In this document: in pieces, positions 19,078 through 64,000 of the stretch
How the letters are laid out: each line of letters begins with the position of its first letter
How positions within the stretch are numbered: position 1 is the stretch's first letter
Assembly (NCBI GenBank): GCA_904063045.1
Contig: CAJFCJ010000019.1
Coordinates: forward strand, 1,627,700 to 1,691,699
Origin: Dimorphilus gyrociliatus
Lineage: Eukaryota > Animalia > Annelida
Direction: 5' to 3'
Length of the DNA: 64,000 nucleotides
The notes under the pieces: model-generated
The model's input: the letters and a program-made list of their open reading frames with translations, nothing else
Database searches by the model: none
Told to the model about the DNA's origin: nothing
Program-made: the position numbers and the translations under genes

Positions 19078-22000
19078 ATGAACGAATCGACACGAAAAGA
19101 TGACGATGATCAGGGTTTCAATCATTTTGGGGAGTATTTTGATCCAAAAGCGGAAAGTGACCTGGACCCATATTTAATGCCTGGATCCTCTCTACCGTCG
19201 GTAGCTGCACCTCCATTACAACCTTCTCACGGTGGTGTTGTAAAACCTGAAGCGCCAGAACAGCGCAGACCAAAAGGACGACCCGCCAAGGGCGAATCGG
19301 CCAGCAGATTTGGCTCCGTACAATGTGCCGTTTGTAGTAAACGATTTAATAATTCGTCAGCTCTAGCAAAGCATAAACTAACTCATTCCGACGAACGGAA
19401 ACATGTATGTAATATTTGTTCTAAGGCATTCAAGAGACAAGATCACTTAAACGGACATATGATGACTCATCGTTCTAAAAAACCATTCGCCTGCAAAGTA
19501 GAGGGCTGCGATAAGAGTTATTGCGATGCCCGATCTCTACGCCGTCACATGGAAAATACTCATCAACCAGAACCTATGGGAGGTAAAATTTTTGACTTCG
19601 ATCCTGTTTATAGAGCAGCCTACGAAAAATCATGGACGGGGTCAAGTATCGATGGCAGCCTTCAACAACAATACAGTCCGATAACCCCGACTAGTCCTAT
19701 TCCGAATAAACCGCCCCCGCCCTTATGGGCTGTACACGGTGTAGAGGAGCACATGACTGTCGAATGTAAGGAATGTCATCGTCGCTTTAAGAATGTTGCT
19801 GCCTTGAACGGTCATATGCGTTTGCACGGTGGATACTACAAGAAAGAAACACCATCAGCTAATACCAATACCAATGCGAATACCAATACCACTCGTAATA
19901 ATCCCATTCCTATCCCCATTCCCAATCCAATTCCTAAACCTCAAGAGCAGCCGAAGTCATTTGTTATTCCTCAACAACCTAAAACAATACCGGCAGTAGA
20001 GGAGAACAATATAATGTCTACAGCTTTACCAGTACAAATTAATACAAGTACCTTAAACGTACATAATAGGAATGCTGAAGAATACGATCCAAGAAGGCAT
20101 ACTGTAGCTATGCCCAATTTAACTGAACAAAAACCAATCATTCCGGCTGTCTCAACATCATGCTGGACCTATCCAGCTCCTGATGTAACCGTTTCCCAAT
20201 CGGTTATTCAACAGATAAGTACCCCTTACACTCAAGCACCCCTTCCACCTGTGTCGAATATACATTTAAAGGCGGAACCGTTAACACCAAATCAGCTTCC
20301 TATTTCACCAAAGTCTATGCCAGCGACTCCACTTGGCAGGAAAAACCACTTTACATTCCCGACGCCGAATGATTGCGGTCAAATAAACGACTCGATGGAC
20401 GAATTTGGTGAACATGTAGGAGATGACGACGTATTTGCAACTCAGTCAACTCTTACTTCAGCAGTATGCACTTCAATGGCACAAGCGGCTGATCGAAAAA
20501 GACGTATGTCAGCTGATCCAGACAAATATACAATGCCCAAACGACCATACGTAACAAAGGATAGTATCGTAAAACTATTACAGCAAGCTGGTATGGAAGA
20601 AGTACTTGAGAAATTGGGATACGAAGTCGATACGGGAGGTGGAGATCAGCCATTACCAGTAGACGATTCAATCGTTAATCATATACCTCCCCCGTTTGTT
20701 CAATTCAATTCAAGCGCTAATGTTGCGTTGGAACAAATTGAAAGCACTTTATCTATTAACGACACAATAATGCCTCACTATCCAGCTCCAATGTCTGTTC
20801 AAGGAGGAATACTTCCCAATAATAATAATAATAGCACAGTCACTAATAATAATAACAATAATACTAATACTAATAGTAGTATTAGTGGTAATGTTACAAC
20901 TCTCCAAAGGGGTGACTTTATATTCGATTCTCAGCCGCTCGTTGAAAACAAAAGCAGTACAACTAGTACAACCTTGGACACTTCTGCGAACGTTAATACC
21001 CATAATTCCTCTAGGGAGAGCTCAGTATCCACTGTTAATCGTCAACCAGAACGTTTAAAAGACGACTTTCGAAATCCTCAATTACCTAATTCTACTACTA
21101 CACTGGCACATAAAAAGAAAAAACCCCGACCGGAACCTTTAGTGATTCCTTCAGCAGTCAATCAAACCTACGGCTATTATTCTCAGTTGAGGTCGCCTAG
21201 AATACGTGAAGGACCATTCGAACTAACCAACAATAAGCAACCTCCTCCTTATACACCACCACCAATTCTGTCTCCTGCTAGATACGGTTCCGGTCTTTTC
21301 TGGACAGTGAGGAGGCCTGCTAAAAAGCGGCCGTCACCGCCTGATTCTCCTGATAGCTGTGATACTGAAATGGAGGATGAAGAACCTCCACCAGAAACTG
21401 ATGTTATGCCACATGTGAATATAGGCCCAAGGTATCAGGCTCAAATACCGAAGGTTCAATCATATAAATATAGAGAAGAGCGTGTTTCATCGCCAGAAAC
21501 GCTTGTTTGGTCTGTTGACTCAAGAACAGAACTAAGCGAAGATCAACTGCTAAAATACGAAGATGTTGCCTGTAGTGCTGCCATACCAGGGAAAGGAACA
21601 AATAAGGAATATGCTCTTCACGTTCTACATGCTGCTCACGGAGATGTTCAAACAGCTATGATGTTATTATTAACTGGAGACTTGCAAGCGGTTGAAGACA
21701 AATTTAGAAAACGAGTAAAGACAGATCTCATCTTTAATGAAACAGATATTTGGAATCGAGACGAGATAGAATCCTTCACATCCTCAATGACCAGATATGA
21801 CAAAGATTTTGTCACGATCAGCAAGGATGTAGGAACGAAATGTGTGCAACAGTGCGTTCAATTCTATTACTTATGGAAGAAAGTCTGCGTTGATGATTAT
21901 AAAAGAATGAGAGTTTTAAGAAAAAGGCGACTGCAAGATGAAATGTATAATTATAGAACAAGAGGTGGCTCGGTTAGTCCATTCAGCCAGGATAGTGTTT

Positions 22001-58592: not shown

Positions 58593-61500
58593 TCAATCAA
58601 GCGGAACTTTTTCAGACTCAGAAGTAACATATATATCACTAATGGCTTTTTGTCGTTGACTTAATTTTTCAAAATTCTGCAAAAATGAATAACTTGCTAA
58701 TTATTTAATGAAAACAAATAAACAAACTAAATTATTTACCTTTGCGCCAGAAGATTTCCTTGATAGCCAAAATGCGATCATTACAACAAGGCCTATTACG
58801 CATAAGAAGGCTACAACACCGGAAATAATCAGCGCCAAAAGAGTACTATCCGAATCTTTATCATCTTCATCTTCGTCTTTTGTAGTGTCAACTTCAGTTA
58901 ATTTATGCGTTGTTTGAGGCTTTTCAGCAACGGCCGTTAGTTTGAGTTTAAGATTTGGTTCGTTCCATTCAATCGTGAATTTCTCTGTTGAGATCTATAG
59001 AAGAGATAGAAGAAATATCTTTTATTCCCTTTTTGTAACTCAATAGAGAATGAGTAATAGTCACATGTAATAGTTATTTTTTCCCTTTTTTAAAAAGACA
59101 CATTGTGATAAAATAAGTAAATATATATCACTATTCTATATGGTTCTATTACCTTTCTAAAGAAATTATCCATTTCTGCGGATACATCTCTGTTAGTTTT
59201 CACTTCATAGTGCACTATGATACTTCCTCGAACGACCTTAATAAATAAAAAAAGAGAGCAATTAATAAATATTAATAAGAACTATATCAATAAATAAATG
59301 TAAACCTACATTTTTAATTTGAATATGATTAAAAGAAATTTCCAATTCCGACGCGATTTTCTTTGCCATATCACTGTTTGATTTGAAGTTTATATTCAGT
59401 AATGATATTTCAATATTTTATATTTTACCTCTTAAATTTTAGAACGCCAACTTTATTAACAATACTAAACGAATGATCGAATTTGATGCTTGATACGAAT
59501 TGTCTAATTTCTTGAGTTTCTAGAATAATGAATTGTTTTAATTAGTATAGTAATTATCTTTATATTAGGAGACCTACTGCAATTAAGCAAGTCTGATTCG
59601 GATTTCTTAACAGATATTTGAGAAAGTTGTTGTCCTCTTGGATCAACGCAGAAGCATATCGTATCTGAGCACTGTTTAGGACGGAATGCACCATCATCGG
59701 TACATTGTGGTTTCCAATCACCCGTAATATTCATCATCTTATCCAGGACGTATTTTGCGTGCCTTCGATGACATAATTTTATTGTTTTTTGACAGTTTAC
59801 AGTTGTCTTTTTAATAGGATCAATGAAGAGAGTTTTATTACATGAACAAAAGTCCATTTGGCAATATGCTTCGGGATATTTATGGCAAGTTGCATTTATA
59901 TCGCTGCATTGCATTGCCTGATTTTCACATGGCTCCATTTCTTTGCATAAAACCCCTTGACATCTCTTAATGCACTCTCCCTTTGTCTTGAAATTATTTT
60001 TATTTCCATTTATACCGTTATACAAAAATGAGCGACACGTTTCTGATGAAGAATCATAGTAGTATCTTTCTTCACCAGAGGTTCCCACTCCGGTCAATGA
60101 CATTGAACAGACATTTGAATGATCTTTATCCTTAGCTAAAAAAAGAAATGAATGCTTGTGAGTCACTAACTCGAGTTTCCCTAAACAATTTGTTTAAGCT
60201 TACTTTCAATAAGGGTACAGTTAACCTTCTTTTCACCTATGAAATATTCAACCGAGCAATTTTTACCACAAGGATTAATTCTACATTCTGCTCTTGGATG
60301 CTCTCTGCACTTAAACATTGAGCACAAAGATTCGTTACAACTCCTTAAAGAATCCTTTCGATTGCAAACTAAAAAACGTACAATATTTTTAGGATAGTTT
60401 AAAAATGACACAAAATTATATATATATAAATTTATATATATATACTTGATGTGTTTTTATATTGCTTCGAGCAATTAGGTATACCACTAGTTGTTCGAGT
60501 GCCGGGAATTACTGTTCCATTAGGGAAGGAACACCACCGTACACCAAGTGAAACTGAGAACTGGATTTTACTGAAATCTCCATTTTTGTCACAGGATGGC
60601 ATTGTAATAGGCATACTGCTATTCAGCATCAAACTAATATTGGCTAGTTCTCTTGCATGTTGACATTTTGTTATCTCGAAGGGTATTGCTATTATTTAAT
60701 TTTTAATAAAACAAAATCATTTTAAACTCAATAGGCAGTAAATAAAGTACCTTTTAAACACGTTGTTCCTGCTCCTGTATCACAGCATTTCCAGTCATCA
60801 GAACCAAACCTATTGATACAATGTTCATCTTCGTGACATTCCATTGATGATGAGCCTGAAATTCCTTTGGGGCAATATCCCTTTACAACGCCTAAAAATA
60901 AATTTCATTTTGACAAAAAAAACATAAAAAAAAATACTGACGATGAGCAAACTTGTGTTTACAATGGGCATATCTATTTCCCCAGTTACCTGTTCCCCAA
61001 TCACTAGTACTAGGTCTTCCAGTTCCCCATCTACCTGTGCCATATCCACCAGTTCCCCACCTGCCTGTACCATAGCCACCAGTTCCCCATCTACCAGTAC
61101 CATATCTTCCAGTTCCCCATCTACCAGTGCCGTATCTTCCAGTTCCCCATCTACCAGTGCCGTATCTTCCTGTTCCCCATTTTCCTGTTCCATATCTTCC
61201 AGTTCCCCAATAACCAGTACTGGGTCTGCCTGTTACCCACGGACAAATACATGGTCTGCCTGTTCCCCAACTTCCAGTTCCCCATCTACCAGTGCCGTAT
61301 CTTCCAGTTCCCCATTTACCAGTACCATATCTTCCAGTTCCCCATCTACCAGTGCCGTACCTTCCAGTTCCCCATTTACCAGTACCATATCTTCCAGTTC
61401 CCCATCTACCAGTGCCGTATCTTCCAGTTCCCCATTTACCAGTACCATATCTTCCAGTTCCCCATTTACCAGTACCAAATCTTCCAGTTCCCCATTTACC

Positions 61501-63422
61501 AGTGCTAGGTCTTCCTGTTCCCCAGCTTCCAGTTCCCCAATCACCAGTGCTAGGTCTTCCTGTTCCCCAACTTCCAGTTCCCCATTTACCAGTGCTAGGT
61601 CTTCCTGTTCCCCAGCTTCCAGTTCCCCAATCACCAGTGCTAGGTCGTCCTGTTCCCCAGCTTCCAGTTCCCCATTTTCCTGTACTGGGCTTTCCAGTTC
61701 CCCATTTACCAGTGCTAGGTCTTCCTGTTCCCCAGCTTCCAGTTCCCCAGTCACCAGTGCTGGGTCTTCCTGTTCCCCAACTTCCAGTTCCCCATTTACC
61801 AGTGCTAGGTCTTCCTGTTCCCCAGCTTCCAGTTCCCCAATCACCAGTGCTAGGTCTTCCTGTTTCCCAACTTCCAGTTCCCCATTTACCAGTGCTAGGT
61901 CTTCCTGTTCCCCAGCTTCCAGTTCCCCAATCACCAGTGCTAGGTCGTCCTGTTCCCCAGCTTCCAGTTCCCCATTTTCCTGTACTGGGCTTTCCAGTTC
62001 CCCATTTACCAGTGCTAGGTCTTCCTGTTCCCCAGCTTCCAGTTCCCCAGTCACCAGTGCTGGGTCTTCCTGTTCCCCAACTTCCAGTTCCCCATTTACC
62101 AGTGCTAGGTCTTCCTGTTCCCCAGCTTCCAGTTCCCCAATCACCAGTGCTAGGTCTTCCTGTTTCCCAACTTCCAGTTCCCCATTTACCAGTGCTAGGT
62201 CTTCCTGTTCCCCAGCTTCCAGTTCCCCAATCACCAGTGCTAGGTCGTCCTGTTCCCCAGCTTCCAGTTCCCCAATCACCAGTGCTAGGTCGTCCTGTTC
62301 CCCAGCTTCCAGTTCCCCATTTTCCTGTACTGGGCTTTCCAGTTCCCCATTTACCAGTGCTAGGTCTTCCTGTTCCCCAGCTTCCAGTTCCCCAGTCACC
62401 AGTGCTAGGTCTTCCTGTTCCCCAACTTCCAGTTCCCCAATCACCAGTGCTAGGTCGTCCTGTTCCCCAGCTTCCAGTTCCCCATTTTCCTGTACTGGGC
62501 TTTCCAGTTCCCCATTTACCAGTGCTAGGTCTTCCTGTTCCCCAGCTTCCAGTTCCCCAGTCACCAGTGCTAGGTCGTCCTGTTCCCCAACTTCCAGTTC
62601 CCCATTTACCAGTGCTAGGTCTTCCTGTTCCCCAACTTCCAGTTCCCCATTTTCCTGTACTGGGCTTTCCGGTTCCCCAATAACCAGTGCCAGATCTTCC
62701 TGTTCCATATCTTCCAGTTCCCCATCTTCCTGTTCCCCATTTGCCAGTTCCATATTTTCCAGTTCCCCATCTACCTGTTCCCTGTTTGCCAGTTCCCCAC
62801 TGGCAAACACATGGTCCACTAGTTCCCCAATCGCCTGTTCCCCAATCTCCTGTTCCCCAATCACTTGTTCCCCAATCACCTGTTCCCCAATCACCTGTTC
62901 CCCAATCGCTTGTTCCCCAATCGCCTGTTCCCCAGTCACTAGTTCCCCAATCACCAGTTCCCCAATCACCAGTTCCCCAATCGCTTGTTCCCCAATCGCC
63001 TGTTCCCCAATCACCTGTTCCCCAATCACCTGTTCCCCAATCACTAGTTCCCCAATCACTAGTTCCCCAATCACCAGTTCCCCAGTCACTAGTTCCCCAA
63101 TCACCAGTTCCCCAATCACCAGTTCCCCAATTGCCAGTTCCCCAATCGCCAGTTCCCCAATCACTTGTTCCCCAACCATTTGTTCCGCGACCGCCTGTTG
63201 CCCATCCAGGTTGGTCGCTTTCACATGTAGGAATTGACGAATTCCAATATTCCCACCAAACCCAAGGTGGATAATCTACTGAAATTTCTGAAAGAAAGTT
63301 AAATGATTAAAACATTAAAAAGTTTTTTGATTCTTACTTCTTGATTCTGCATAGCTTTGAAGAAGAACAAGTAGCACAAGGAGACGGAGCAACATTGTGC
63401 TTGTCAGCCCTTGAATGTTCAT
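58593..63422 (-). CDS. 1368-aa type I membrane protein: signal peptide, WG/GW pentapeptide repeat, WAP-like, thyroglobulin-1 x2, Kunitz, Cys-rich x2, SEA-like, TM
   Basis: Exons 63422-63338, 63278-60942, 60891-60751, 60688-60446, 60368-60204, 60135-59578, 59519-59429, 59373-59310, 59236-59153, 58994-58740, 58676-58593; all GT-AG and phase-consistent (4107 nt). Signal MLLRLLVLLVLLQSYAES; Kunitz RYYYD...C..F.Y.G..GNKNNF; TY QC...CFCVD; TM LLALIISGVVAFLCVIGLVVMIAFWL. Confidence 0.85.
60979..63174 (-). repeat. Coding tandem repeat, 15-nt base unit with 30-, 45- and 300-nt higher-order units
   Basis: Plus strand (acc agt tcc cca atc)-type units; about 2.2 kb; blocks 300 nt apart (e.g. 61681 vs 61981, 61741 vs 62041) are identical. 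Confidence 0.98.
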
Positions 63423-64000
63423 AACCAAATAAAATATGACGACAAATAATTCTTATATCAATGTTCTCAATATTAACAATATTGATTGAAATTGAGAAAT
63501 TCTTTAATATATAGTTTAAATCAGAATGTATTAGATATTATTGTCAGGAAAACATATCAGGTCATATTAATTATTTTAGTGAATGTCATTCTTTAGTTAA
63601 AAGTTAATGAGTAGAATTGGTAAGTAGTGTACTTCTAATTACAAATAAAAAATAGAAGTTTTTTGCTTTTTCAATAGTTTCTTTAAAAGCTTAGTGGAGC
63701 CATCTATTGTACTTTATTTTTTTCTCTTCGCTGAATGGTCACTTGCCAAGTTATTTGCATTAAAATTTTCAATGTAAACAAATGGTCTCCTGTTTTCTCA
63801 GTAATGGAAGTGTAATTTGGCAAAAAGTCCATAGTAGATTAATTATATGAAATAAAATTTTAGTTTAGCAAACTAATTAAGTGTTTTTCTAAATTAGGTT
63901 TGCCGTAAAAAGATAAATATATTTGTAATAAGCTGAGGCCGGCAAAGTTAATTTGCATATGCGCAACAATACATATTTTGATCTTAATTCGTTTCTCTTA

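Follow-up and report, generated by a model that had tools for sequence, protein, structure and literature searches.

A stretch of 64,000 nucleotides from the annelid Dimorphilus gyrociliatus (contig CAJFCJ010000019.1, positions 1,627,700 to 1,691,699; here 'the window', with position 1 its first letter) carries on its minus strand a gene for a membrane protein with a long tryptophan-, glycine-, and threonine-rich repeat. This 'repeat gene' consists of 11 exons running from 63422 to 58593 (Table 1). In an exon-by-exon test each intron was found to have GT-AG ends and the phases to chain, with the joined coding sequence being 4107 nt in length, that is, 1368 aa plus stop, and possessing zero internal stops, as the initial annotation of this DNA had modelled it. 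The introns, at 50-158 nt, fit the genome, since the median intron of this PacBio-based assembly is 66 bp (PMC7854359). The assembly (GCA_904063045.1) is that of the meiofaunal D. gyrociliatus (PMC12890243), with two single-exon proteins of the window recorded at NCBI on this contig, and a human contig is rejected. A gene with a Trp/Gly/Thr repeat is confirmed as real. Its product possesses a signal peptide, a 730-aa repeat of acidic and basic blocks, a disulfide stalk, a GSIIV-containing module, a transmembrane segment (TM), and a short tail, each of which is kept in two species, the repeat at both of its ends.

The first exon does supply a signal peptide in both species, as had been claimed, though translation probably starts not at the first ATG but instead at the second, at 63395. 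That start is backed by the NCBI model as well as by the orthologue, whose sole ATG here is this second one, followed by a matching hydrophobic signal. The NCBI annotation is of a 1346-aa gene, 63395 to 58593, without a Pfam match on record. As counted from that start, the NCBI model is 13 residues short, which is explained by a single 39-nt shift at exon 4. An exon 4 acceptor at 60649, i.e., a shift of this type, would remove the first cysteine of a thyroglobulin type-1 (TY) domain. As the orthologue backs the longer exon, with its acceptor at 60688, the NCBI annotation is probably wrong at exon 4 (60446-60688).

The reading frame of the repeat itself requires separate consideration. Exon 2 provides 778 open codons in what can be described as the Trp frame, and the length of the NCBI model demands that this exon be included. 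The open reading frame (ORF) track, as had been noted, lacks the true frame, over the repeat listing shadow frames only. One antisense ORF, Ser/Pro-rich and of 764 aa (60943-63237, plus strand), is long and begins with ATG, and the repeat array holds recent exact duplications. The locus might be read from these properties as an artefact, that is, as an intronic satellite, or instead as a wrong frame, with the antisense ORF the real gene, and the probability of either is practically negligible. Particularly, the antisense frame is open automatically, since exon 2 contains no Leu and only a single TCA codon, which supplies the antisense ORF's stop. Variation among repeat units falls chiefly, moreover, on the third base of codons as read in the Trp frame, with the Gly/Thr/Gly core showing an entropy of 1.0-1.3 there but only 0-0.16 at the second base. 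Of 37 single-base differences between units, 20 are silent in the Trp frame versus 6 in that of the antisense ORF. One further antisense frame is competitive, at 18 silent, yet contains three stops. The orthologue retains the Trp frame along with both exon 2 splice sites. The initial annotation had allowed that another frame might be in use, and codon-position entropy, silent counts, and the orthologue all favour the Trp frame. The antisense Ser/Pro ORF is rejected as a gene given its automatic openness, the silent-site counts, and the frame of the orthologue, and a Glu/Leu-rich frame is rejected as well.

Table 1. Features of the repeat gene and of the sequence upstream of it, in window coordinates.
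Feature	Position	Strand	Basis
Exon 1, signal peptide	63338..63422	-	splice model, NCBI start 63395, orthologue
Exon 2, whole Trp/Gly/Thr repeat, phase 1-1	60942..63278	-	open frame; ends kept in orthologue
Exon 2: N-terminal cap, 34 aa, aromatic cluster WxxWxxW, one conserved Cys, conserved GWATG	63175..63276	-	
Exon 2: acidic block, 24 pentapeptides W-G-T-(G/S)-D, net -22	62815..63174	-	
Exon 2: first CxC motif, PCVCQ	62800..62814	-	
Exon 2: basic aromatic block 1, (W/Y)-G-T-G-(R/K), net +8	62665..62799	-	
Exon 2: middle block, 385 aa, 15-residue units of PSTG(K/D) + WGTGS + WGTGR, net +28	61510..62664	-	
Exon 2: basic aromatic block 2, net +16	61255..61509	-	
Exon 2: second CxC motif, PCICP	61240..61254	-	
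Exon 2: basic aromatic block 3 (net +11) and exon-2 tail, one conserved Cys	60943..61239	-	
Exon 3, WAP, six Cys	60751..60891	-	Pfam
Exon 4, thyroglobulin type-1 (TY1)	60446..60688	-	Pfam
Exon 5, unnamed eight-cysteine (8-Cys) module	60204..60368	-	profile match in coral P0143, fold prediction
Exon 6: Kunitz 60109-59960; second 8-Cys module 59947-59792; six-Cys TY 59773-59579	59578..60135	-	
Exon 7, start of Cys-free membrane-proximal module (SEA-like, unproven)	59429..59519	-	
Exon 8, amphipathic stretch of membrane-proximal module	59310..59373	-	
Exon 9, RGSIIVH; GSIIV at 59227-59213	59153..59236	-	
Exon 10: module end, acidic linker, TM ~58841-58764, basic stop-transfer residues	58740..58994	-	
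Exon 11, cytoplasmic tail and stop	58593..58676	-	
Conserved non-coding block upstream: TGTTTAC, ATGCAAAT octamer, ACTTGnCAAGT palindrome with variable centre	63729..63783	-	near-invariant between species
Second conserved non-coding block, ATGCAAAT octamer	63930..63965	-	near-invariant between species

The repeat consists of 146 in-register pentapeptides, i.e., 730 aa, which is the approximate length of WGTGx-type repeat that had been claimed. Gly, Thr, and Trp are counted 254, 147, and 103 times, respectively, with the composition of exon 2 being G 33%, T 19%, W 13%, S 9%, and P 5%, and with 95 Trp-Gly dipeptides present. Following an acidic block at -22 are basic blocks which together come to +63, with exon 2 overall at net +41 and at an isoelectric point (pI) of 10.3. 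The middle block, containing a 409-nt exact duplication at period 300, is by this pattern a recent tandem expansion. Six Cys are found in exon 2, and since all of these lie outside of folded domains, while Cys counts are even in each of the folded modules, they are candidate cross-links. Two WxxW consensus sites for C-mannosylation had been pointed out as well; both are present in D. gyrociliatus, but only the second is conserved in the orthologue.

These same values, that is, a net charge of +41, 13% Trp, and a pI of 10.3, along with 51 Lys/Arg sites that are not before Pro, are also what might be seen with a tethered antimicrobial or microbe-binding brush, the Trp/Arg blocks of which would bind or damage bacterial membranes, whether intact or as peptides released at basic residues. 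Trp/Arg-rich peptides indeed are membrane-active. The units, however, are one-third Gly and are without aliphatic residues or a dibasic processing pattern, and such a function leaves the acidic block and the CxC motifs unexplained. This reading is viewed here as quite improbable.

Relatives of the repeat were found nowhere beyond two worm species, though with limited search sensitivity. Among proteins of about 440-1400 aa, the stop-free stretch of exon 2, used to search for homologues, gave 430 candidates, with 0 at E<=1e-3, and a search with the N-terminal cap alone gave zero candidates. These blanks are weak evidence given that length range and because the window's own annotated protein likewise failed to surface, repeat searches being limited by low-complexity scoring. 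Neither Pfam nor NCBIfam provided a match for the repeat, including to the pentapeptide-repeat (Rfr-fold) profile. A DNA pattern for three W-G-T-G-x units, as run against 185,579 prokaryotic genomes, gave 70 matches of 3-10 units, mostly shadow frames and unrelated. The sole prokaryotic match for which the W-G-T-G frame clearly is the longest lies in a Gaiellaceae metagenome-assembled genome (DASYUZ010000048.1; L010), where a 1250-codon open frame holds a short W-G-T-G-F run that is probably unrelated. Nothing published on a repeat or gene of this kind came up in a search of the literature.

The second species was reached via exon 6. A search with this exon across 1.84 billion representatives gave a sole end-to-end match (P0022), at 52% identity over 180 aa, encoded on Logan contigs from SRR23372228, SRR23372216, and SRR23372229. 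None of the best 150 exon 6 matches possesses a Trp-rich repeat, and JGI metagenomes contained no relatives of exon 6. The locus of this orthologue is syntenic, with the same WD40 gene found tail to tail (86%) along with the same leucine-rich-repeat (LRR) gene (59%). Exons 3-11 are kept at 29-70% identity, with introns at matching positions, and the contig starts within the repeat, where it reads in the Trp frame. The orthologue's 5' end, as reached via the upstream SPRED gene, encodes a signal peptide that begins at the second ATG, after which there is a phase-1 intron and then a cap consisting of WWxYWN, the conserved Cys, and GWATG, followed by PSTG and acidic W-G-T-N-D units. The signal-peptide exon, that is, joins the repeat in frame in both species. 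Eight N-glycosylation sequons, furthermore, are at matching positions in the two species, and Cys counts are equal between them in exons 3, 5, and 6. The extracellular placement of the repeat in the initial annotation, as distinct from the cytosolic location of the WG/GW repeats of Argonaute hooks, is borne out by the spliced signal exon and by these sequons. GW182 and the NRPE1 tail, both Argonaute hooks, do possess many Trp-Gly dipeptides within low-complexity sequence, a likeness which is compositional only. An Argonaute hook is rejected here, as the worm repeat, being luminal and behind a signal peptide, cannot meet Argonaute.

Based on synteny and identity, the second species is probably a dinophilid. 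The three runs already named along with SRR31984834 are of genomic DNA of a D. gyrociliatus relative, with gene order kept and neighbour proteins 59-92% identical, and should be useful as a comparison genome.

Between the two species the proportion of synonymous differences (pS) is 0.55-0.84, i.e., near saturation, and that of nonsynonymous differences (pN) is 0.22-0.43, with pN below pS in every exon tested. The gene thus is constrained yet fast-evolving, as its pN nonetheless is far above the 0.04-0.07 seen with two neighbour genes. Dinophilids inseminate by means of enzymatic dissolution of epidermis, and have adhesive glands and a gelatinous egg cocoon (10.1101/491886), making plausible a reproductive protein, of the same chemistry but acting elsewhere, whether in the gelatinous capsule of the eggs, as an adhesive on gametes, as glue with which males attach, or as a shield of the female epidermis against male enzymes that dissolve it. 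The gene's faster evolution relative to its neighbours is in keeping with such a role. Structural surface proteins typically change fast too, however, and bulk glues and capsule proteins usually lack a TM anchor. A reproductive role is therefore considered to be unlikely.

Following the repeat is a stalk for which Pfam finds the full WAP, TY, Kunitz, and TY series that had been proposed, i.e., WAP in exon 3 (PF00095, 1.5e-6 and 4.3e-6), TY in exon 4 (2.1e-11), and both Kunitz (PF00014, 2.5e-15) and TY (3.6e-10) in exon 6. These domains nevertheless look partly disabled. The Kunitz domain has four Cys rather than the six of a canonical inhibitor (MEROPS I2), being without Cys14-Cys38 in both species (the positions are Gly/Ile here and Gly/His in the orthologue), and its P1 differs between the two, Thr versus Leu. 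The WAP domain has six Cys, having other residues in place of Cys2 and Cys7 in the two species alike, and so falls short of the eight-Cys, four-disulfide arrangement of the elafin/SLPI type; in elafin it is the Cys2-Cys7 bond which anchors the reactive loop. The first TY domain (TY1) has lost its Cys3-Cys4 pair together, in D. gyrociliatus only, leaving four Cys here versus six in the orthologue, whereas the second (TY2) has all six in both species. Most TY domains, though, are not inhibitors. The initial annotation's suggestion that the polymer carries its own protection from proteolysis does not fare well given these losses.

It is in light of this cysteine pattern that one can consider what is closest to the initial annotation's title, namely a protease inhibitor anchored in the membrane, resembling either HAI/SPINT or thyropins, for which the repeat would serve as bait or as a sacrificial decoy. 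There are Pfam matches to three inhibitor folds, and TY2 has all its Cys in both species. HAI-1, a top PDB match, and HAI-2 (SPINT1/2) similarly are type I membrane proteins with Kunitz domains, but lack a repeat, and their Kunitz domains have six Cys, with Arg at P1. Here, by contrast, Kunitz and WAP both are without the reactive-loop disulfide in both species, P1 is not kept, and a TY1 disulfide is gone in one species. Since Cys14-Cys38 loss leaves BPTI active (PMC4065081), inhibition by the stalk is judged doubtful rather than refuted. Cathepsins, for their part, can be inhibited by Kunitz proteins of atypical form (cited in PMC13181417). The inhibitor reading as a whole has a low probability.

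The top Kunitz matches are mostly of the four-Cys type, and the four which were identified are nematode multi-Kunitz proteins. In the Caenorhabditis elegans apical matrix, MLT-11, which patterns cuticle, likewise combines TY with Kunitz domains, one of them without Cys2/Cys4, as do nematode relatives (PMC13181417). Unlike the worm protein, these nematode proteins are secreted and contain Lustrin modules alongside numerous Kunitz domains, and neither a TM nor a Trp repeat was present among the fetched matches. A toxin is rejected, there being no venom sign and with conkunitzin matches merely reflecting the four-Cys Kunitz pattern.

The remainder of the stalk is less familiar. The 8-Cys module of exon 5 belongs to no Pfam family but is found also, repeated, in a coral protein, and its AlphaFold fold is confident, at a predicted local distance difference test (pLDDT) of 82, with no PDB match. 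Among its full-length structural neighbours the best is a carboxypeptidase inhibitor from a snail, which at E 3.4 is not significant, and the second 8-Cys module, in exon 6, is a weak match to the exon 5 profile. The module is a candidate new domain family. Closer to the membrane is RGSIIVH, invariant between the two worm species, within which GSIIV resembles the SEA autoproteolysis motif, i.e., GSVVV/GSIVA (PMC6954182). The 'SEA-like' label of the initial annotation is unproven: GSIIV is conserved and collinear with the coral module, but neither single exons nor the coral module have a SEA match in Pfam or PDB. The TM and 35-aa tail are as had been described, with a strong TM in exon 10 (hydropathy 3.0 over 19 residues) and with a 35-aa tail in which NFEKL, IYV, and a terminal KVPLD are kept in both species (58596-58676). 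No canonical sorting or PDZ motif was recognised in the tail.

A signal, a repeat, a Cys-rich stalk, a cleavable module, a TM, and a short conserved tail are together the layout of PMEL. The protein might accordingly be a PMEL-like secretory-granule scaffold, with a luminal repeat that condenses or fibrillises in gland granules, organises cargo, and is freed by cleavage near the membrane. The conserved motifs of the tail and the suitability of an aromatic repeat for condensation would fit with this. Neither species' tail, however, has a canonical dileucine or YxxPhi sorting signal, and PMEL homology was absent from both Pfam and the exon 6 search, such that there is only a slim likelihood of this being the case.

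The coral protein (P0143; Montipora capricornis XP_068730483.1) is 1298 aa in length, bears the automatic RefSeq name 'thyroglobulin-like', and is the subject of no study found in the literature. Like the worm protein it consists of a signal and then WAP, TY repeats, the 8-Cys module, a collinear GSIxV module (here GSIVV), a TM, and a short tail. It differs in lacking both the Trp repeat and Kunitz, in having eight TY and four WAP domains, and in retaining all eight Cys in its aligned WAP. It is a type I membrane protein, and within its residues 1126-1298 lies the GSIVV module, which is missed by Pfam and by PDB sequence search.

When exons 7, 8, and 9 were scanned separately, their best sites in the coral protein were 1126, 1155, and 1176, which abut as exon lengths predict, and the exon 9 site ranked first of 198,836 positions. 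Each of these matches is weak alone, and the coral protein was chosen after its motif was seen, but that three best sites should abut by chance appears unlikely. The stalk is, by the modules thus shared, old, extending from cnidarians to annelids, with one coral gene recovered and with no further annelid member found in the searches made. In the coral the signal runs straight into WAP, while in the worm there is one phase 1-1 repeat exon at that junction; exon insertion behind the signal peptide is the simplest history for the repeat. The gene's most likely affiliation is with a family of uncharacterised TY/WAP/8-Cys/GSIxV membrane proteins, of which it would be a repeat-bearing variant. What is new, that is, is the exon 2 repeat, with the stalk shared with the coral protein. 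The initial annotation knew of no described protein with this architecture. That holds for the repeat, which matches nothing described in the searches made, but the architecture is only half new, because the coral protein has the stalk in common.

What might such a protein do? The interpretation favoured here, with confidence that is about evenly balanced, is of a type I membrane glycoprotein that serves as a mucin-like apical coat protein, in which a Trp-rich polymer of charged blocks, cohesive and perhaps shed, takes the place of the usual Pro/Thr/Ser brush. Membrane-tethered mucins, of the MUC1 type, similarly possess a signal, a long Thr/Ser/Gly-rich tandem repeat, a GS-hydrophobic motif near the membrane, a single TM, and a short tail. 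The worm repeat, by contrast, is not Pro/Thr/Ser-dominated, being instead 13% Trp, strongly charged, and Pro-poor, and the worm stalk is of TY/WAP/Kunitz. As a mucin-like coat, the protein would reach the apical surface of an epithelium, i.e., epidermis/epicuticle, foregut, or gland lining. There the repeat would be disordered, would cohere by way of Trp-Trp and Trp-Arg/Lys (cation-pi) contacts, and would have its acidic block pair either with the basic blocks or with polyanionic mucus, with the CxC motifs and two terminal Cys locking chains together via disulfides. The WAP/TY/Kunitz stalk would serve mainly as a compact spacer and binding scaffold rather than as a classical serine-protease inhibitor, and a cut at G-S in the GSIIV loop could let the coat be shed under force.

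Cohesion by Trp stacking, cation-pi contacts, and acid-base pairing is proposed by analogy with annelid and mussel glues. Coacervation of these kinds, polycation/polyanion and cation-pi, is established for sandcastle-worm and mussel glues (PMC9999432). The sandcastle-worm proteins Pc-1 to Pc-5 and the mussel foot proteins resemble the worm repeat in being Gly-rich, aromatic, and cationic, with polycation and polyanion partners that coacervate. They differ in being small and secreted, in employing Tyr/DOPA (3,4-dihydroxyphenylalanine) or phosphoserine, and in bearing opposite charges on separate chains, whereas the worm repeat has both charges on a single membrane-anchored chain, with Trp the main aromatic. 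No sequence homology to these glues is implied.

An AlphaFold single-sequence model of exon 2 residues 1-240 displays no fold and no strands, at a pLDDT of 39, in keeping with a disordered repeat. Several points weigh against the coat interpretation. Such a low single-sequence value fits disorder, weakly, but is no proof of it, and an aromatic solenoid or an amyloid-like fibre might be formed instead. The middle of the orthologue's repeat is unassembled, such that conservation is seen at both ends of the repeat, with repeat length, block order, and CxC motifs being those of D. gyrociliatus. The supposed SEA module is without a Pfam or PDB match, and BPTI lacking Cys14-Cys38 still inhibits trypsin, as noted.

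Beyond the gene itself are the two near-invariant upstream blocks, with counterparts at 590-650 and 790-835 of a second-species contig (L080). These may regulate either the repeat gene or the divergent SPRED gene. TGTTTAC is Fox-like and ACTTGnCAAGT represents two NK2-like half sites, and the blocks could hint at expression in foregut or epidermal glands. The ATGCAAAT octamers are unenriched across the whole window (8 versus 5.9 expected), and the 63729-63783 block has no Rfam match at gathering score. Outside of the window, a block of about 75 nt that is near-invariant lies immediately upstream of the SPRED start codon (L075, ~20230-20310), with its Rfam matches all sub-threshold (snoU85, 16.6 versus 41 bits). 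Positions 1-58500 of the window are an ordinary, compact annelid gene neighbourhood. With Pfam on record are an ankyrin-DHHC palmitoyltransferase, a tektin, CEP44, an LRR membrane protein, and a WD40 protein, the latter, downstream of the repeat gene, clustering with DgyrCDS11696. Recognised by eye only are a G-protein-coupled receptor, a sirtuin, an atlastin, a zinc-finger ELM2-SANT factor, a dual-specificity phosphatase, and a carboxypeptidase.

As Trp is rare and costly, an extracellular repeat with approximately 100 of them that is kept in two species must do physical work. The underwater adhesives and coats covered in one review (PMC9999432) rely on Tyr/DOPA, His, or phosphoserine, and a Trp-based, single-chain, acid/base block design would thus be a new template. 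The bolder claim, fairly unlikely, is that the repeat represents a new natural class of biomaterial, i.e., a Trp-based block polyampholyte (or else a pentapeptide solenoid or fibre with a Trp core) able to assemble by itself in seawater with neither DOPA nor phosphoserine. A single exon would in that case have brought it to a membrane stalk that is ancient in animals, undescribed, and equipped with a module that cleaves itself, there to serve as a component of annelid epicuticle or of a meiofaunal adhesive. Should this instead be merely another lineage-specific, low-complexity coat protein, then its significance would be moderate. In terms of the family, the result points to an undescribed group of TY/WAP membrane proteins extending from cnidarians to annelids and presents a probable case of a repeat exon inserted behind a signal peptide. 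In terms of the organism, the repeat offers molecular access to the surface coat of annelids, itself poorly known, and, if indeed a Trp block polyampholyte, would be a molecularly defined component of annelid epicuticle or of a meiofaunal adhesive.

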